Positions 5,772 through 21,654 of a stretch of 64,000 nt of DNA are shown here, piece after piece. The position numbers were made by a program, and so were the translations under genes. The stretch covers positions 1,984,001-2,048,000 of the forward strand of contig OZ218956.1 in the NCBI GenBank assembly GCA_965112735.1. The letters run 5' to 3'. Numbering within the stretch: position 1 is the first letter of the stretch; every line of letters begins with the position of its first letter. Source of the stretch: Phaeosaccion multiseriatum. Its lineage: Eukaryota; Protista; Ochrophyta, other classes. The notes below the pieces were generated by a model. It was not told where the DNA came from, did not search any database, and was given only the letters and a program-made list of their open reading frames with translations.

Positions 5772-8700
5772 ATGCCGAACGAGGAGGAGGAGGAGAAAGT
5801 GTTGAAAGTGTTGCAACAGCAAGGGAAGCACGCGATATCGCCCTACTGCTTCGAAGTGGGCGAGTTCAGAGCTAGAACATTCGACCCTACGAGCTTCGTC
5901 CTCACGTATCAGCAGCTCGTGCCGCTGGACAAGCTCAGAAATGACATGCACAAGTTCCTAGCGGCTCTGCAACAGGTAGGCAGTGCTCTCTCACACATGA
6001 CCATGCACTCGCCTTGCCGCCTTCCGCCACATTTGCGAAGTGGTGTTGCTGTGTGGCGGTGGCTCTTGCGCAATGGGCGAGAGGGGACTGGGATATGTGG
6101 TGGCTTGTTGGTTGCTTTCGCCTCTCTGCTGCTTTATTACGTGCAGCTCCTGCCGCTGCTGCTGATGATGCTGCTGGTCCTGGTGGAAGTGAACTTGGCG
6201 GTGGTGAAATAGCGGTGCTAGGTGGGGGAGAGGAGGAGGAAACAAAACAAAGTTTGACCAAAGTTGGGACGGCCCGACCGCGTTGTGGGTGTGCTCCTAA
6301 CTCAGCGCCCCGTTCTCGCCCTACTGCCCTTCCTCCCCTCAGGATTTATACGACCTCATCAATAGAGACTATGCGGACTTCATCCTTGTGTCCTCCAAGC
6401 TCACTGGCGTTGACGTCAAGGTGTGTGTGTGTTAGAGAGAGAGAAGAGATGAGAGAGAGAGGAAGAGTGTGGGAGTGAGCGAGAGAGAGAAAGAGAGAAG
6501 AGAGTGGAGAGAGAGAGAGAGAGTGCTTGAGAGAGAGAGAGATGTGACACTCTCGCTCTGCGGGGCTTGTTTCCTCTGACTTGTATCGCCTCGATGCCGG
6601 AGCGGCGGGAGGGAGGAGGGAGGGGGAGAGAAGAGAGGAGAACAATAGGTCTCGCCTTTGACCGACCTTGCAAAGGATCGAGTCTGCGTGTGAGTATTCA
6701 ATACTCAATTCTCATTCTCATCCTCATTCTTATCCCCGTCCCCATCCTTCTCTTTTATGTGTGTGTCCTAATCCTTCTCTTCGACGGCACGCCGTCTCAT
6801 TCCTTCTCGTCCCCCTACCACCCCGCACTCCTCTGTGTGAACAATTGGCCGTGCCACGCCACACTGTGAACACAACAAACAACCAACACCTATACCGCAA
6901 CGAAAAGGTGTGTGAGTTAGAGGCTCCAGTCGCCGGCTTTGCGTCCCGCATAGAGGGCTTGAGCAGCCAAATCGAGGCCAAGGCAGCAGGCATCCGCAGC
7001 ATTGCACAGCAGCGGACGGCTGTGCAGGACAAGATCAGGACCACAAGAAAGGTGAGGGTCAGGGTGCGGGGTAGGGCCAGGGTCAAGCTCAAGGTCAGGG
7101 GCGAGTGAGGGTAAGCTAACGGTGTTTTGGTTTGTATAGTTTGTGTATGTTAAAGCGGTACATGTACATGTATACGAAGGGAAGCCGCATCCTCTCTTCC
7201 TTTTGGCCTATCCTTTTCGGGTATTTCCCTGTCCCTTCCCTTCCCATCCCTCTGCTCAGCACACCATATGTCTGTTGCTTGTCCCCTCCCTCCCTCCCTC
7301 TTTCCCTCCTCCCCTCCTCTGCTGTCACTTTTGCAATGCACAGAGTTTGCGCTTCATATCTCTCTTGGAGCACGCCGAGCGGCTTTTAGGTATCGCAGAT
7401 AGCAGCAACAGCGAAGGAGAAGAAGAGGAAGAGCAAGAAGGGGAGCCCTCTCTGCGAGGAGGAGGAGGAGGAGGAGGAGGAGGAGGAGAAGATGCAGACG
7501 CAGGCGTCGCAGGAAGAGGAGTAGGGAGGAGTGAGAAGAGAGGGGAGACGTCGGATGTGTACGGAGGAGAAGGAGGAGGAGGAGGAGGAGGAGGAGGAGG
7601 AGGCAGGGTCAACAGCCATACCCACGAGTCGTTAGCTGAGCGTGACTTTGACTCTGGCTATACGGACGATGACATGGGGGCCTTCGAGCTCGCCTTTCCT
7701 GCCCTGTCCACCACCAATTATCCAGACGAGGAGGTACAGCATGAGGAGGAGGCTGGTGCGGGGGCAGGCATCCGCAGCAATGGAGTCGGGGGAGTCCACA
7801 CTGGGGCAGCAGCAGCAGCAGCAGCAGTTGGTGATACAGAGCGCTGCGCGATGCTGGAGCGAGTGGCGCTGTACGCTCTCATGATGGGCGCAGACCTTAA
7901 GGCCCTGTCCTCCCCTCGCCCCCCTCAGCAGGTGGAGTCTTCAGGCCTGGGCTCAGGTCCAGACTCAGGAAGTGCTACCTCTTCTACTGCATCTGCTGCC
8001 ATCCCTGTGGCTCCTATGAAGGACCTCTCTATCCGAGCCACGCGTGTGGAGGCGGAGGTGACGCGAAAGCTTCGTACGGTCTTTGCCGAGCTCGTCGCGC
8101 CTCCTACCGCTCGATCGGGCTCGGCGGCTGTCAGGGCTACTGCTGTACCACCAACTGGTGGTGGTGGTGTTGGTGGTGGCGCTGTTGTTGCTGCTGTTGC
8201 TGGAGAAGCGAGTGGGGGTGTCGGGAGGGAGCCCAACGCAACGGCACTGCTCCATTGTCTCCGGTCCTTCGCCGCCCTAGGCTGCGGCGTGGAGGCAGAG
8301 AGGCAGTTCGCAAGGGTGGTGGTGGAGCCCTTCTTGAGCGCTCACTTTACGCAGGGCCTGTTGGACGGAGGGAGTAGAGGTTCGTACCGGGGTCTGGAGG
8401 CAATTTACAGCGACACACTTGCCTATCTGCAGGAGTCTTGTCACGGGGTGCTGCGGATAGCAGAGGGACTCTTTGGACTTCCACCGGCACTGTCTGAGGG
8501 ACAGGAGCAGGGGCAGAGACAGGGGGGTGGGGAGGAGGTGAAGGGGGCGAAGGAGGGAGGAGGAGGAGGCGCAGCACCAGGAGGAGCAGGAGGAGGAGGA
8601 GGAGGAGGAGGAGGAGGAGGAGGAGGAGGAGGCACGGTTGGCACTTCACCACCCCCGATATGCCCGCTACCCGTGGACCTGTTGTGCAATGGGCTTTGGG

Positions 8701-10613
8701 CTCCCATTTTCCAGGCCTTGACGACTCGGCTAAAGTCAATCTTCGCGACTGGGATGGCCGAGGTGTTGCGGCGTAACTATGTGCACACAAGGCTCTTCAT
8801 TGATCAGTTGGCACTGCTGTGTGGGCCTGAGCTTGCGCCCAATGCGCGAAGGCGGCTAGAGGGACACGCTTTGATGGCGCAGGTGAGGGAGAGGAGGGAG
8901 GGGGGGGGCGGGGGATGATGAAAACCAACTCTGCAGGAATTCCGCTTTTTCTCTCTCCGCAAAGGCAGTCATTTGTCCCAAGGCAAAGTCAATTACCTCA
9001 GCTCCTCAATCCCTCCCCTCCCCTCCTCCTTCTCCTTCTCCATCTCCCCTCCCCTCTTCTCCTGGCCTACGCTCCCTCTCTCCTTCTCAAGCTCCGGAGT
9101 AAGTGGAATCTTCCCATTTACTTCCAGCTCTGTGCTCGTGAAGCCACCTCCAGTCTGGAAGCAGCGTACAAGGCTGTGGGAGAGCACGGCTTACAGCATG
9201 CCATTCCAGCGGACCGTGAAGCCATGAGTAGCAGCAGTGGCAGCAGTGGCAGCAGCAGCAGTGGGGGCAGTGGCATCACGACGAGTAGGGACGAGAGTGA
9301 TGACGAGGACTTTGATTTGCCCATCACTGCCAAGGCGTGGAGTTCTCTGCAGCAGTGCTGGAGCGACAAGTGGTTCCTCGCTCCTCTGGCACATCGCTTC
9401 CTGAGGCTCTGCCTGCAGATGGTGGGGCGTTATCACAGCTGGCTTAGCGAGTCCATACCACCACCAATAGAAGAAGCACGAGGAGGAGGAGGAGGAGGAG
9501 GAGGAGGAGGAGGAGGAGGAGGAGGAGGAGGAGGAGGACGACGACGAGGAGGAGTGAAGCCGAGATCGGGTAGGACGGCGGAGGAATTGGTCTTGCTGGC
9601 GTGGGATGCTTCTCGGCTCTACGAGAAGCTTGTTGGAGGGGGCACAAGTGGTGATGGCAGCAGTACTTCTGCTTCTTCGCTGCTCTCAAGAGAGCGCTCC
9701 CTCGCTGGGCAGATGCAGGCCTGTTTCCTGAGAGCAGACCTGCCTACGGAGGCCTTCGAGGTGGCTCAAGAGGCGCTCCGAGAGGCGGCCTTGCCTCTAG
9801 CCCAAGAAATAACGCAGCTGTGGACCGGGGTGGTGCAGCATCTCACTGGACAGTGTGGTGGAATGCTGCTGGCGGTCAAGGGCATCACAGCGACGTACCG
9901 TATGACCAACAAGCCTTGCCCGCAGCGCCCGAGCCCCTTTGTACCGAACATTCTCCGCCCCCTGCGTGACTTTGAGTCCACGTGGACGAACCGCCTCCCG
10001 AGCTCCGCCAGCCTTGTCGCTGCTACTGCCGCCGCCGCCGCTGCTGCTGCTGCGACTGATGCTGCTGCCGGTGGTACTGCTCCTGTTGGTGGCGGTGGTG
10101 TTGGTGGTGGTGGAGACTCGTCGTCTGTGAACTGGTGGAAGCGGGCCGTATTGGAGGCCGTCACTTCGCAGTACCTCTCTACCGTCAGGGACATGCTCAC
10201 GACAGTGCGGCAGATGGAGGAGGCTCTCAGCAAGCGTAAGACCACCAAGGGGAGGCGGGGCTCCACAGCAACAGGAGGGGGAGGCGGAGGAGGAGGAGGG
10301 GGAGGAGGAGGAGGAGGGGGGGGGGGGGGCGAGTCTCTCGTCGGTGGCTGCTGCGGCTGCGGCGGCCGATGGGGTGGTGCTGAGCGACACGCAAAAGATG
10401 ATGGTGCAGCTGGATTTGGATGTCAAGGCGTACGGGAAGGAGGTACGGGCCCTGGGGTTCGATCCCGACTCGCTGGAGGCCTACGCTCCCTTGGGGCGAG
10501 CCGTGGGCAACACATCCCCACCAGGGGAGGTAGCTGGGGGTGGAGCACCACCACCAGCAGCAGCAGCAGCAGCAGCAGCAGTTGGTGATACATCAGCAGT
10601 TGGGACCTCGTAG
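5772..10613 (+). CDS. COG2: Conserved oligomeric Golgi complex subunit 2 (multi-exon)
   Basis: Exon 1 FDPTSFV..LDKLRNDM; exon 2 DLYDLINRDYADFILVSSKLTGVD; later KWNLPIYFQL, VKGITATYRMTNKPCP, SDTQKMMVQLDLDV. One apparent frameshift in a poly-G run near 10320. Confidence 0.88.
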
Positions 10614-13834: not shown

Positions 13835-14366
13835 GCAAGAGGAGGAGGAGGAGGAGGAGGAGGAGGAGGAGGAGGAGGAGGAAGGGGGGGAGGAAAAGCG
13901 TTGAGATGGGTGAGTGAGATGTGTGAGTGAGTGAGTGGGTGAGACACCAAGAGAATGACGGAGTGAAATTGATTTAGCTCAATCCGTTGCGTCCCAGCCC
14001 CGCAGGACCTCCCACCCCCTCACCCCACATACTACCCCTCACACCCCACCACAAACCACCCGCCCACGCACAAGACACACACCCACCTGTATGACAGAGC
14101 CTCTGATGTAAGTGCATGCACATGAGCGAGGCCTCCATAGGCGGCTGCCACACCGCCTGACCGGAGGAGGAGGAGGAGGAGGAGGAGAGAGGCAGACAGA
14201 GCACCATTGGTGTCTCCAACACGGCCATTGCCAGGTCTAGTACAGCCCGAAGAGCGGTCAGCAGCAGCGCCAAAGCCCGCGCCGCCGCCACCGCCACACC
14301 CTCGGCCTCGTCTTGGTCGTGGTGGAGGGGGTCGAGGGAGGGGGGGAGGGCTTCCAAGGGGACGTG

Positions 14367-16776: not shown

Positions 16777-19770
16777 ATGAAGGGCAACCCGGGAACCGCC
16801 TTGGGCTTCATTCCCGCAGCAGCAGGAGGCGGTGTTTCTTCTGCTGGTGGGTGTGGTACTACAAGCTCATGGGGAAGATGGCTCTCTGCTCCCTTTCCCC
16901 CTCCTTTGGGGCGGCAAGTCCTCCGCTTCCTTGGAGCCAAGGGTGATCTCAATGCGGAAGGGCCGCGTGGTAGCAGCGAGCGAGGACGGCAAATAGCGTT
17001 GAACAAAGAGATACAGAGACTTGGAACTACGCGCGACTGGAGGGGGGTGGCGAGCACCGTCGAGGAGGCGAAAGCAGCGGGGCTGATGAACGTCATGTTG
17101 TACACCTCCTCGATTGCTGCGGTGGGTAAGGCTGGGCGATGGAAGGGCGCGCTTGCTCTATTCAGTGAGATGCGAGAGGGGGGGATTCAGCCCAATGAAT
17201 TCTCGTACAGTTCTACGATAAGTGCTTGTGGCAAGGCAGGGAAGTACGAGGAGGCGCTTGAGTTGCTGGAGGAGATGCGCAGGGAAGGGCTTCGACCCAA
17301 CCAACTCACATACACTTCTACGATTAATGCTTGTGGCAAGACAGGACAGTATGAGAAGGCGCTGTCCTTGCTGAAGGAAATGCGCAGGGACGGGCTACGG
17401 CCCCATGAATTCTCGTACAACGCTGCGATTTCTGCTTGTGGCAAGGCAGGAAAGCACGAGAAGGCGCTGGAATTGCTGAAGGAGATGCGCAGGGAAGGGC
17501 TTCAATCCGACAATTTCTCGTACGGTTCTGCAATTGAAGCTTGTGGCAACGCTGACGAACACGAGATGGCGCTTTTCTTGCTGAAGGACATGCGGAGGGA
17601 AGGGCTTCAACCCACTGAAATCTCGTACAACTCTGCAATTAGTGCTTGTGGCAAGGCAGGAGAGCGCGAGAAGGCGCTTGACTTGCTGAGGGAGATGCGC
17701 AGGGAAGGGCTTCAGCCTGACAAATTCTCGTACACTTGTGCGATTTCTGCTTGTGGCAAGGCAGGGCAGTACGAGAAGGCGCTTGACTTGCTGGAGGAGA
17801 TGCGGAGGGAAGGGCTTCAACCCGGTGTCGTCACGTACAGCTCTGCGATTTCTGCTTGTGGCAATGCAGGGCAGTACGAGAAGGCGCTTGACTTGCTGAA
17901 GGAGATGCGCAGGGAAGGGCTTCAGCCCAATATATTCTCGTACAACTCTGCGATTTCTGCTTGTGGCAATGCGGGACAGCACAAGAAGGCGCTTGCAGTA
18001 CTGAAGGAGATGTGCCGGAAGGGCGTCAAACCCAATGAAATCTCGTACAACTCTGCGATTTCTGCTTGTGGCAAGGCAGGAGAGCACGAAAAGGCACTGG
18101 ACTTGCTGAAGGAGATGCGGAGGGAAGATCTTGAACCCGATCAAATCTCGTACAACTCTGCGATTGATGCTTGTGGCAATGCAGGAGAGCACGAGAAGGC
18201 GCTTGACTTGCTGGAGGAGATGCAGAGGGGCGGACTTCAGCCCAATGAAATCACGTACAACTCTGCGATTTCTGCGTGTGGCAAGGCAGGGCAGTACGAG
18301 AAGGCGCTTGCCTTGCTAAAGGAGGTGCGAAAGGAAGGGCTTCAGCCCGACCTATTCTCGTACAATTCTGCGGTTAGTGCTTGTGCCAAGGCAGGGCAGT
18401 ACGAAAAAGCGCTTAGCTTACTAAAGGAGATGCGAAGGGAAGGCCTTCCACCCAATGAAGTATCATACGGCTCTGCTATTGATGCTTGTGCCCAGGCAGG
18501 AGAGCACGAGAAGGCGCTTGACTTGCTGAAGGAGATGCGGAGAGAAGGGCTTCCACCCAATGACATTTCGTACGGCTCTGCGATTGATGCTTGTGGGAAG
18601 GCAGGAGAGCATGAGAAGGTACTAGCCTTGCTGGAGGAGATGCGGAGAGAAGGACCTCGACCCAATGAATTTTCGTACAGCTCCGCGATTTCTGGGTGTG
18701 GCAGGGCAGGAGAGCCCGAGAAGGCGCTTGACTTGCTGCAGGAGATGCGCAGGGAAGGGCTTCAACCCAATGTCATCACGTACAACTCTGCGATTGGGGC
18801 TTGTGGCAAAGCGGGGCAGTACGAGAAGGCGCTTGACTTGCTCAAGGAGATGCGGAGGGAAAGGCTTCAACCCAATGAAATTTCGTACAGCTCTGCGATT
18901 TCTGCTTGTGCCAAGGCAGGGAAGTATGAGAAGGCGCTTGGGATGCTGGAGGAAATGCGAGAGGAAGGGCTGGAGCCAAACGAATTCTCGTACAGTTCTG
19001 CAATTAGTGCTTGTGGCAAGGCAGGGCAGTACGAGAAGGCACTTGACTTGCTGAAGGAAATGCGAGAGGAAGGGCTGGAACCCGATGACATCACGTACAA
19101 CTCGGCGATTGATGCTTGTGGGAAGGCAGGGCAGTACGAGAAGGCGCTTGACTTGCTCAAGGAGATGCAGAGGGAAGGACTTGAGCCCGATCACATCTCG
19201 TACACTTGTGCGCTTTCTGCTTGCGGCAATGCAGGGCAGTACGAGAAGGCGCTTGACTTGCTGGAGGAGATGCGAGAGGAAGGCCTGCAGCCCAATGAAA
19301 TCACGTACAACTCTGCGATTGATGCTTGTGGCAAGGCGGGGGAGTACGAGAAGGCGCTGGCCTTGCTTAAGGATATGCGGAGGGAAGGCATTAAGCCCAA
19401 TGACGTGACCTACCGGGCCGCTATCGATGTCCTGTCCGTGCACGAGCAATGGAGCTCGGCTGACGGCTTGTACGCAGAGGCCATCGCAGAGAGTGTTTTG
19501 TCACATTGGAAGAAGAGCGATGAAGGGAAGGTGATGGACTTGCACGTGCACTCGGAGTGGACCGCCAAGGCCGCCCTTCGCTACGCTCTCCAAGTGGAGA
19601 GGGTGCAGGGACAGATCACTGTCATCACCGGCCGAGGCCACGGTAGTGTGGACGGCGTCAGCGTGCTCAAGCCTGCGGTACTGGCGTACCTCAACGAAGA
19701 GCTCGGACTCCATGCCACGGAGCAGCCTGAGCACAGCAACGAGGGCCGCGTGATTTTGAAGCTGGCGTAA
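16777..19770 (+). CDS. P-class PPR protein (22 complete 35-aa repeats plus one degenerate) with C-terminal SMR domain; uninterrupted 997-aa ORF
   Basis: Consensus PNEISYNSAISACGKAGQYEKALDLLKEMRREGLQ; SMR motifs MDLH, ITVITGRGHGS, LKPAV, NEGRV at about 19530-19767. Confidence 0.95.
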   Translation: MKGNPGTALGFIPAAAGGGVSSAGGCGTTSSWGRWLSAPFPPPLGRQVLRFLGAKGDLNAEGPRGSSERGRQIALNKEIQRLGTTRDWRGVASTVEEAKAAGLMNVMLYTSSIAAVGKAGRWKGALALFSEMREGGIQPNEFSYSSTISACGKAGKYEEALELLEEMRREGLRPNQLTYTSTINACGKTGQYEKALSLLKEMRRDGLRPHEFSYNAAISACGKAGKHEKALELLKEMRREGLQSDNFSYGSAIEACGNADEHEMALFLLKDMRREGLQPTEISYNSAISACGKAGEREKALDLLREMRREGLQPDKFSYTCAISACGKAGQYEKALDLLEEMRREGLQPGVVTYSSAISACGNAGQYEKALDLLKEMRREGLQPNIFSYNSAISACGNAGQHKKALAVLKEMCRKGVKPNEISYNSAISACGKAGEHEKALDLLKEMRREDLEPDQISYNSAIDACGNAGEHEKALDLLEEMQRGGLQPNEITYNSAISACGKAGQYEKALALLKEVRKEGLQPDLFSYNSAVSACAKAGQYEKALSLLKEMRREGLPPNEVSYGSAIDACAQAGEHEKALDLLKEMRREGLPPNDISYGSAIDACGKAGEHEKVLALLEEMRREGPRPNEFSYSSAISGCGRAGEPEKALDLLQEMRREGLQPNVITYNSAIGACGKAGQYEKALDLLKEMRRERLQPNEISYSSAISACAKAGKYEKALGMLEEMREEGLEPNEFSYSSAISACGKAGQYEKALDLLKEMREEGLEPDDITYNSAIDACGKAGQYEKALDLLKEMQREGLEPDHISYTCALSACGNAGQYEKALDLLEEMREEGLQPNEITYNSAIDACGKAGEYEKALALLKDMRREGIKPNDVTYRAAIDVLSVHEQWSSADGLYAEAIAESVLSHWKKSDEGKVMDLHVHSEWTAKAALRYALQVERVQGQITVITGRGHGSVDGVSVLKPAVLAYLNEELGLHATEQPEHSNEGRVILKLA
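17092..19401 (+). repeat. 105-bp coding tandem repeat array (PPR units)
   Basis: Near-identical nucleotide scaffold (GCTTGTGGCAAGGCAGG...GAGAAGGCGCTTGACTTGCTG..GGAGATGCG.AGGGAAGGGCTTCA.CCC) every 105 bp. Confidence 0.95.
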
Positions 19771-20384
19771 GTAAGCAAAAGCGTCCAGGGCTGATGAGAG
19801 GGGGGCGTGTTGGTAGTACAATAATCACAACGGCTGGCTGGGAGGGAAGGATGGTGGGAGGGAGGGAGGGAGGGAGGGGGGGGAGGGACGCCGAACAAGG
19901 GCATCACAAATGGCTCAGTGCAAGACCCCCTGATGGAGAAGGTAGGGTGTACAGCCTACAGCCTACTTATTCTTCGTTGACGTTTCATTTATATGTACAT
20001 ATATATAGTCCTACTATATGCTTCTTCCCCAGGGAAGAACAACTTTTTGTTTGTTTTTTGAATAAATAATTAAAAAAACAAAAACAAAAAACAACAAAAA
20101 AATTATGAACTACTTCGAAGTAATAAATACGAACCCACAGCGTCCAGTCCAATCCCAAAGTGCCACTCTTTTGTGTCTTTGGATGGCAAAAAGAGGCCAT
20201 CTCTCTCTAAATCTATCCTGTATATTGTACATCACTAACTCATCATATCTTTCTCTCCCCCATCTCCCAAACCTTGCTTAGGGCAGGGCCGGCAGCCGCT
20301 GGGCCGTCAACCGCAGTGAGTCCATTCCGGAGGGGTGTTGTTTGCATCACAACGAAGCAAAAAAGAAGAGAAGCTCGGCTCCGG

Positions 20385-21654
20385 TCACTCGGTCCCGGTG
20401 TTTGTACGTAAGGGAGATAGACAGGGAGGCTCCTCCTCCTCCTCCTCCTCCTCCCCTCCCCTGTCCTGCTCCTCCACCCCTTCAACGTGGGGTTCCCTCC
20501 ACCCCCCATCCTGTTCCTCCTCCTCCTCCTCCTCCTCCTCCTCCACCACCACCACCACCACCACCTCCCCCTCCTCGCTAAGCCTGCCTGGGAGTCCAAG
20601 AGCGGCCTTGTGAACGTCACGGTGGACGTAGGGAGAGGCGGAACCGAATCCAGCCTGGAGGTGGAGACAACAGAGGTAGAGATAGAGGAGAGAGGGAGAG
20701 AAAGAGAGAGATGGGGAGAGACAGGAAGACAGAGGGAGTGAGAACGAAAAGAGGTACAGAATGAGAGGAGAGCGAGAGAGAAAGGGGAGAGAGCGAGGGA
20801 GATGTCAGAGGAGACACACGCCGCGGCAGGCAGTCCGTGGCGGAGGGCAATGGAGCGAGGCGTGGAAGGAAGGAAGGAACGCATTCACTCATTCGTTGAC
20901 CCGAGTGAACAGAAGGAGGAGAGGCTACTTCTGGGGCCGAGTGCAACGCAACACAGCGGTAACAGTACACAAAGAAACACAAAAAGCAGACACGCACAAA
21001 CCATAATACACATACACAAACATGGCGACTACCCACCTCCCCCCCCTTTGCGGATGCGAAGGAAAGTGCGCAGCGCAGGAGGGCGTCAAACGCAAGGAAG
21101 ACGTTGAGGAAGACAATGAGGTTGGCGAAGTGAGCTTGATGGAACTTGTCGTCTCTGGACACGTCGAGCCGGACCAGCATGCTCAGGTACATGACCTGAG
21201 GGGAGGAAGGCAGGGAGGGGAGAAGAGGGAGGGGAGGAGGGAGGGAGGGAGGGAGGGAGGGAGGGAGGGAGGGCGGGAGGGAGGGAGGGAGGTGGCCAAC
21301 ACACGGTTCAACGGTCAGCAAAACGAGCAACGCGACACACAGCATCACATCACGGGGCTCAGGGGGGCAGCGTGAGGCAGATGGAGATACCATCAGACAA
21401 GGGATTGGTAGAGGGAGGAAGACCCTCAGACAGAGGTGGGTAGAGAGAGGGAGGACGGAGACCCTCACCAGGAATATGACGAGGCTGCCCAGCACCTGAC
21501 GAGATTGGAAGGAAGGAAGGAAGGAAGGAAGGAAGGAAGGAAGGAAGGAAGGAAGGAACAAATGGAGGAAAGACATAAAAAGGACAGAAGGAACAAGGCA
21601 GGCGACCGTCAGAATACAGCGCCATACTGAAGCTTCGCTGCTCTATGCAATATG

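Follow-up and report, generated by a model that had tools for sequence, protein, structure and literature searches.

A 22-motif P-class PPR-SMR gene of Phaeosaccion multiseriatum with a candidate target in the plastid rps2-tsf spacer

Organization of the gene

The window analysed here, a stretch of 64,000 nucleotides (nt) from Phaeosaccion multiseriatum (assembly GCA_965112735.1, 67 Mb in 22 contigs; contig OZ218956.1, C7:1984001-2048000), was found to contain a gene encoding a pentatricopeptide repeat (PPR) protein that ends in a small MutS-related (Smr) domain. Its open reading frame (ORF) was found to be uninterrupted over 997 amino acids (aa), and the positions of its parts are collected in Table 1, where coordinates without a contig name are those of the window. 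The N-terminal extension, in which no Pfam domain was matched, was followed by a degenerate motif 0, 22 canonical PPR motifs, a degenerate motif 23 and the Smr domain. The paralogue consensus of motif 0, IAL(T/N)KEIQRLG..RDWRGVA, may be read as a helical hairpin.

The canonical motifs were matched by PPR_2 (PF13041) in 22 stretches (E=2.6e-245) and by PF01535 in 21 stretches (E=1.3e-207), and the spacing between successive motifs was exactly 35 aa in all 21 intervals. At the DNA level, Tandem Repeats Finder reported a period of 105 bp with 21.3 copies, 79% matches and 0% indels at 17167-19403. The Smr domain (PF01713) was scored at 28.1 bits against a curated cut-off of 25.7 when the last 116 residues were scanned alone, and PDB sequence matches to the Smr domain of N4BP2 were obtained. 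Every computable feature of the class was present, and the gene encodes a P-class PPR-SMR protein, as the first-pass annotation had proposed from the repeats and from the retained DxH and TGxG motifs, found here as DLH and TGRG.

Table 1. Features of the PPR-SMR gene, of its family cluster on C7 and of the plastid region around the candidate site
Feature	Position	Strand	Basis or remark
PPR-SMR ORF, single exon, complete	16777..19770	+	997 codons, then TAA stop; no N
N-terminal extension, aa 1-70	16777..16986	+	alignment of 13 class-A paralogues
Degenerate PPR-like motif 0, aa 71-105	16987..17091	+	35-aa block in the array register, conserved in paralogues
22 canonical P-type PPR motifs, aa 106-875, 105 bp each	17092..19401	+	Pfam, Tandem Repeats Finder
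Degenerate terminal PPR motif 23, aa 876-910	19402..19506	+	positional orthologue in paralogues; helices in model
Smr domain, aa 921-996	19537..19764	+	Pfam Smr, PDB sequence matches, Foldseek
DLH, aa 921-923	19537-19545	+	MDLH spans aa 920-923
TGRG, aa 951-954	19627-19638	+	Smr domain motif
Family locus L025	C7:1978432-1981341		flanking family member
This gene in the C7 cluster	C7:2000777-2003767		
Family locus L020	C7:2052593-2054944		flanking family member
Family locus L029	C7:2056095-2060132		flanking family member
rpoC1	C18:28589-29691	+	Pfam match
rpoC2	C18:31047-34148	+	Pfam match
rps2	C18:34663-35304	+	Pfam match
Candidate site	C18:35351-35372	+	motif match
tsf	C18:35573-36004	+	Pfam match, open frame of 207 aa

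Code and divergence of the repeats

The motifs were numbered so that the base-specifying residues were placed at positions 5 and 35. In this register the 5/35 pairs of the 22 motifs were TN SN TH ND GT ND TG SN NN ND NN ND NN GN GN SN NN SN SD ND TN NN, each of them as listed by the first-pass annotation. Pairs of the standard code (TN, SN, GN, ND, NN and SD) were found in 19 of the 22 motifs, which makes a target predictable from the code as had been claimed, and the other three carried the non-standard pairs TH, GT and TG. The code assignment rests on published land-plant work, in which TH, GT and TG have no established reading.

Positions 9 to 13 were found to contain S9 in 13, A10 in 21, C11 in 21 and K13 in 15 of the motifs, with position 12 occupied by G in 19, by A in three and by E in none. 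Position 17 contained Trp in motif 1 only, and Tyr or His in the other motifs. By these residues the motifs appear to be a variant, of the form xACGK, of the PPR motif of SACEK type, and not that motif as such.

The repeats had been described as near-clonal; they were found to share on average 77% of nucleotides (range 53-89.5%, the upper value being that of the closest pair) and 67% of amino acids, with a mean synonymous divergence (dS) of 0.52. Identical codons were used in 73% of the same-amino-acid pairs between repeats, where pooled codon usage predicts 47%, and the repeats therefore have a common descent at the DNA level beyond what protein constraint would give. A nearest relative inside the same gene was found for only one of the 22 repeats, which runs counter to a recent re-pairing of code residues by the crossover that had been suggested; there has been no recent repeat turnover in this copy. 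The junction cassettes reported earlier were present (NEFSYS three times, NEITYN twice), but their excess was marginal, with a recurrence of 5 against 1.9+-1.6 under column shuffles (P=0.049). An assembly artefact was considered for the array and ruled out by the 11-47% divergence between repeats, the intact frame and the lack of N and of indels.

The highest positional entropy was found at position 1 (2.55 bits), followed by positions 22 (2.02), 33 (1.97), 5 (1.84), 2 (1.77), 9 (1.75), 16 (1.64), 17 (1.61), and 25 and 35 (1.57 each). Position 5 ranked fourth and position 35 about tenth among the 10 positions with at least 1.5 bits. Variation did not fall mainly at residues 35-1-2-3-5, as had been stated earlier; positions 22, 33, 9, 16, 17 and 25 were also highly variable.

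Periodic ORFs of 107-275 aa in other frames or on the antisense strand of the array were found at 17395-18192 (-), 18622-19449 (-), 18665-19054 (+) and 19085-19408 (+). Rather than being genes, they most likely reflect the absence of stop codons from several frames of the repeat unit.

The C-terminal tail

Among 29 aligned tails of the family, the D of DLH and the I, G, G and S of ITGRG..S were found to be invariant; the remaining residues of DLH (L and H) and of ITGRG (T and R), together with most of SVLKPAVLA, were conserved at 90% or more. The structure was modelled for the last two motifs and the Smr domain only (aa 841-997), and the AlphaFold model contained two helix pairs followed by the Smr topology, with a mean predicted local distance difference test score (pLDDT) of 87.6 and a predicted template modelling score (pTM) of 0.82. 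In the numbering of this fragment, the PPR helices of motif 23 were H36-48 and H52-64, followed by the Smr elements E78-81, H87-100, E105-110, H124-135, E140-142 and E151-156.

The best Foldseek match of the model was the PPR-SMR protein pTAC2/PAP2, present as chain G in structures of the plastid-encoded RNA polymerase. The designer proteins cPPR and dPPR were matched with a root-mean-square deviation of 1.0-1.2 A over 65 residues (two motifs) at 35% sequence identity, and PPR10 and the Smr domain of N4BP2/B3BP (2vkc, 2d9i, 3fau) were also among the matches.

Paralogues in the genome

A six-frame search with this protein together with a Pfam Smr search, counted as non-overlapping places, gave at least 59 distinct family loci in the assembly, a number that is a lower bound. 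Among 572 motifs of 42 ORFs, the pairs ND, SN, NN or SD accounted for 84%, the code string was different in every paralogue and the number of motifs per paralogue ranged from 5 to 24. The pairs TH, GT and TG were seen only in the gene described here, which contained a single G-type motif. The gene thus belongs to a large, clustered family whose members differ in code string, which fits the interpretation given in the first-pass annotation. Many paralogues contained repeats with a within-gene nucleotide identity of 0.85-0.94, including pairs at 99-100%, and this gene, at 0.77, was among the least homogenised copies sampled. It is an older, diverged member of a lineage-specific family in an ochrophyte near the brown algae, a placement that follows from mitochondrial cox1, which was 82-83% identical to that of Schizocladia, Discosporangium and brown algae, with no closer named match.

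Four PPR genes, this one included, were found to be clustered within 82 kb on C7. The nearest paralogue, L025, lies 19 kb upstream and has the same overall open-frame length with one canonical motif fewer. The first motifs of the two genes were 81% and the last motifs (motif 23) 88% identical in nucleotides and were positionally orthologous, whereas no colinearity with L025 was found inside the array, where all diagonals were at 0.77-0.81. The flank dS between the two genes was 0.31 in the tail and 0.38 in the head, below the dS of the repeats. Either the arrays were rearranged after the duplication or the flanks were homogenised later; in either case the event was not recent for this copy.

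One of the three flanking paralogues occupies an open frame of 1653 aa. A nearly identical Smr segment (QVERVQGQITVITG) was found to be common to L001, L025 and L020, and the N-terminus of L020 belonged to a different, Arg-rich class. Broken copies were also present: L004 was found to be frameshifted just before the position of DLH, with loss of the Smr domain, and in-frame stops were found in several paralogues, the broken set including L004, L011, L015, C1:3405528 and C7:1291677. These copies are consistent with birth-and-death turnover in the family.

The family bears on the model of the first-pass annotation, in which such genes encode RNA-surveillance endonucleases, reprogrammed by recombination and directed against selfish organellar transcripts, viruses or transposable elements (TEs). 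In such an arms race the proteins would resemble plant Rf-like PPR proteins, with the addition of a nuclease, and this gene would represent one current specificity. The clustering on C7, the variable motif number and the differing code strings speak in its favour, as do the nearly identical repeats of several paralogues, a mark of recent intragenic turnover, the missing positional orthology of the interior repeats at a flank dS of only about 0.3, the broken copies and the precedent of recombination-driven specificity change in RFL proteins (PMC5075784). The divergence and the low maximum identity of the repeats of the present copy are set against it, and the conflict, the target and the cleavage would all be putative.

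The N-terminal extension

The N-terminal extension was found to contain the conserved blocks MxGN..(A)GFI(S/P)AAAGGG and SSWGRW..SAP, with a net charge of +4, and is presumed to be an organelle-targeting presequence. Four N-terminal classes were distinguished in the family: that of this gene (class A) begins with MxGN..AGFISAAAGGG, and the three others are Arg-rich and presequence-like. Most paralogues contained an (A)AAF-TSSWGRW-SAP block 25-40 residues in, which resembles an ASAF-type site more closely. The sequence TALGF had been taken for such a cleavage site; its GF lies in a family-conserved block about 8 residues from the conserved start and is therefore too near the N-terminus for a signal-peptide cleavage site. 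A hidden upstream exon or signal peptide was also considered and rejected: the upstream DNA of 11 class-A paralogues did not align and conservation began at the ATG. The annotated start is probably correct. The 60 bp preceding the ATG were found to be markedly AT-rich in comparison with the genome, which has 58% GC.

Selection on the gene and on its code residues

The ratio of nonsynonymous to synonymous substitution rates (dN/dS) was 0.24-0.33 in motif 23 and the Smr domain, 0.41-0.46 in the N-terminus and 0.37 between repeats. Purifying selection maintains the gene, which is genuine and intact. The dN/dS values bear on the possibility that the copy is a drifting, redundant paralogue heading to loss, with no target of its own. 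Such a history would agree with its weak homogenisation, with the three code pairs unique to it, with the loss of the AAF block from its presequence and with the unusual residues beside both Smr motifs (DLHV, TGRGH). It is very unlikely, however, given that a 997-codon frame has stayed open although the repeats have diverged by about 20%, that dN/dS is well below 1 in all parts and that the scaffold positions of the motifs are strongly conserved.

An excess of variation at positions 5 and 35 had been expected under the surveillance model. In a star-like count against the consensus codon, the ratio of nonsynonymous to synonymous differences per site (pN/pS) of this gene was 1.09 at position 5 and 0.78 at position 35, with similar values at positions 1, 22, 2, 16, 17 and 33. 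For the family, 173 disjoint nearest-neighbour motif pairs at least 90% identical were compared by crude counting, not by a codon model, and pN/pS was 1.04 at positions 5 and 35 together, close to neutral, against 0.51 at all other positions. Equal or higher values were found at positions 1 (2.06), 22 (1.41) and 9 (1.37, partly an artefact of the TCT/AGT serine codons). Of the amino-acid differences between close motifs, 14-19% fell at positions 5 and 35, roughly threefold what a uniform spread would give, and positions 22, 13, 1 and 9 were comparable. The pattern looks like relaxed constraint at several surface positions, the code residues included, and not like positive selection specific to the code. 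The paralogues are clustered as in RFL families, but diversifying selection was not found to be concentrated at the RNA-contact residues.

Position 1, which is not a known code residue, ranked first both in the entropy of this gene and in the pN/pS of the family. At the junction between motifs it adjoins residues 35 and 2, and in this lineage it might have a part in specificity.

Candidate RNA target

The motif predicted beforehand by the first-pass annotation, AARUNURAYUYUYAAAYAGUAY, was searched as DNA. One locus in the whole genome matched with at most two mismatches, namely AAATTTAAATTTTAAACAGTAT in the plastid contig C18, which is identical at 21 of 22 positions and is repeated in the redundant contig C19. 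The mismatch falls at motif 9, where NN predicts a pyrimidine and the base is A. From the Pfam matches on either side (Table 1), the candidate site would lie on the sense strand, in the intercistronic spacer between rps2 and tsf or at the extreme 3' end of rps2. Intercistronic spacers are classical sites at which P-class PPR proteins define transcript ends or activate translation. Under a model of independent and identically distributed bases the chance expectation was 0.03 in the nuclear genome and 0.006-0.05 in a 125-kb plastome, the latter under an assumed GC content of 20-35%.

No multi-copy nuclear target was found with the GT motif read as purine and at most three mismatches allowed, 7 matches being obtained against 8 for the reversed control. 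A nuclear target of the TE type is therefore unlikely, and the TE or viral targets that had been put forward were not borne out. The only near-perfect match was the plastid spacer, the kind of fixed housekeeping target that the first-pass annotation had itself named as speaking against its model. With this result, the nearly neutral code residues and the diverged repeats, the surveillance model is regarded as unlikely.

A mitochondrial protein serving a mitochondrial transcript was weighed in the same way. The first 60 residues, with their positive net charge, their Arg and no strong signal-peptide core, would suit it, and the other N-terminal classes resemble classical Arg-rich presequences. 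Against it, the weight-matrix score of this gene reached at most 11.4 bits in one complete mitochondrial unit of 55.9 kb, compared with 13.3+-1.7 for permuted code orders (p=0.90), and no family-wide signal was found among 34 paralogues (median p 0.53), whose code strings may be out of register where the motif regex missed units; the string of this gene is complete. A mitochondrial role is accordingly judged quite unlikely.

The mitochondrial contig C17 (224 kb) was found to repeat a unit of about 55.9 kb as a concatemer, with cox1 at 13877, 69823 and 181672 (+) and inverted at 122739 (-); the concatemer either arose in assembly or is a real multimeric form. The plastid genome was present in several redundant contigs, C18 to C22, of which C18 spans at least 104 kb. 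The rps2 gene was intact in C18 and contained three in-frame stops in C19, and psbA was frameshifted in C22; these lesions are probably consensus errors in minor contigs.

Neighbouring features of the window

Downstream of the gene, a GGGA microsatellite of 12 copies (19840-19888) was found to start 70 bp past the stop codon, followed by a CTC repeat at 20430-20475. Upstream, the gene for the Golgi complex subunit COG2 (7143-10588, +; COG2_C, E=1.6e-58) was present as two abutting ORFs of 591 and 557 aa in different frames, which points to a single short intron or to a frameshift near 8915. It was the one neighbour identified, and the intron-rich neighbours described in the first-pass annotation were not confirmed by it.

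Proposed function

The explanation regarded as fairly probable is that the gene encodes a fixed-target organellar PPR-SMR factor that processes or stabilises RNA, probably in the plastid, with the rps2-tsf spacer as its candidate site. The protein, presumably expressed, would be imported into an organelle, most plausibly the plastid, where an alpha-solenoid of about 24 hairpins would bind single-stranded RNA over some 22 nt, with residues 5 and 35 of each motif reading one base. Its role would be gene-specific processing or stabilisation at a fixed A/U-rich site, for which the spacer between rps2 and tsf in the plastid rpoB-rpoC1-rpoC2-rps2-tsf cluster is the candidate. The nuclease-type Smr domain, which follows the solenoid, may cut near the bound site.

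Several points weigh against this explanation, and localisation is its main weakness. The maximum Kyte-Doolittle hydropathy (window of 11) of the N-terminus was 1.41, without a strong core of the signal-peptide type, and AAF is missing from this copy, which keeps SSWGRW only, so that the sequence gives no clear sign of canonical import into a complex plastid. The plastid match, though suggestive, is statistically weak: two matches with at most two mismatches were also returned by the reversed-pattern control, and AT-rich spacers raise the number of chance matches. The 5/35 code was worked out in land plants and is carried over here to another lineage, and Smr domains can bind DNA or ribosomes rather than cut RNA.

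For the family as a whole, it was also asked whether its roughly 60 genes are sequence-programmable RNA endonucleases that acquire their specificities by repeat shuffling, with a part of them policing selfish or plasmid-derived organellar transcripts, as an algal counterpart of the plant Rf-like genes that carries its own nuclease; this is held to be a distinctly unlikely account. For the present copy, the reading as a TALE-like, near-clonal and reprogrammable surveillance nuclease is not supported, and the gene by itself gives no demonstration of an arms race or of reprogramming.

Comparison with known systems

Plants, green algae and heterokonts are known to have PPR-SMR proteins, which in plants act in organelle RNA metabolism, and the combination of a PPR tract with an Smr domain has already been proposed as a sequence-specific RNA endonuclease (PMC3858433). 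The plant proteins GUN1, SOT1/PPR53, pTAC2/PAP2 and SVR7/ATP4 combine, like the protein described here, a P-class tract with a subfamily-2 Smr domain at the C-terminus that carries LDxH/TGxG-type motifs, but Arabidopsis has eight PPR-SMR proteins (PMC3858433), in contrast to the at least 59 related loci of this genome. Dinoflagellates usually have one to five (PMC12787238). No relevant paper was found in the literature on a stramenopile or brown-algal PPR-SMR expansion of comparable size.

The best database matches were SACEK-type proteins of Chrysophaeum, Aureoumbra, Polarella and metagenomes, at 30-52% identity. The SACEK variant at positions 9-13 is common to dinoflagellates and heterokonts, in some cases in long uninterrupted series of motifs (PMC12787238, citing Safonov & Berdieva 2025). 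The SACEK-type proteins of CASH-lineage algae share with this gene the x-A-C-x-K pattern, the long regular runs and, in some cases, an Smr domain (PMC12787238), and differ from it as follows: here position 12 is G or A and never E, and the downstream Trp is found only in motif 1. Their repeats were 53-60% identical in amino acids and those of an ordinary Ectocarpus PPR protein 36%, against 67% here; repeat regularity is thus a matter of degree. For the tail formed by motif 23 and the Smr domain, no match at E<=1e-5 was found in a collection of 5.8 billion proteins, in a word search by shared 5-mers among proteins of 548-1745 aa.

The evolutionary model of the first-pass annotation is essentially that of the plant Rf-like PPR clusters, which evolve by recombination, motif transposition and diversifying selection (PMC5075784). 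Clustered P-class paralogues of 15-20 or more motifs, gain, loss and transposition of motifs by recombination and differing codes are common to the RFL clusters and to the present family (PMC5075784, PMC7380019). The RFL proteins are mitochondrial and have no nuclease domain, whereas an Smr domain is present in this gene, and their code residues are under diversifying selection, whereas pN/pS is about 1 here. Unlike for the RFL systems, we know of no cytoplasmic conflict in this alga.

The designer proteins cPPR and dPPR (PDB 4pjr, 5i9d and others) also have a regular scaffold and a four-pair code, but their scaffolds are identical, while in this gene 10 or more positions of the motif are variable and three pairs are non-standard. 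With TAL effectors the gene shares a modular array with one base per repeat. The repeats of TAL effectors are near-identical except for the repeat-variable diresidue and their ligand is DNA; at the level of identity found here, with variation spread along each motif and with RNA as the presumed ligand, the TALE analogy does not hold for this gene.

Significance

Plant PPR-SMR proteins are few and poorly understood, and the role of the Smr tail as a sequence-specific RNA cutter is debated. In this one alga, about 60 natural variants were found on a very regular scaffold that uses mostly four code pairs. The 22 contiguous motifs of the gene, together with the candidate rps2-tsf site, make the plant PPR code checkable outside land plants, and the same gene allows the question of Smr cutting beside a bound site to be asked there. 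If the code reading and the adjacent cutting were both true, the family would provide naturally validated scaffolds for engineered RNA-binding proteins.

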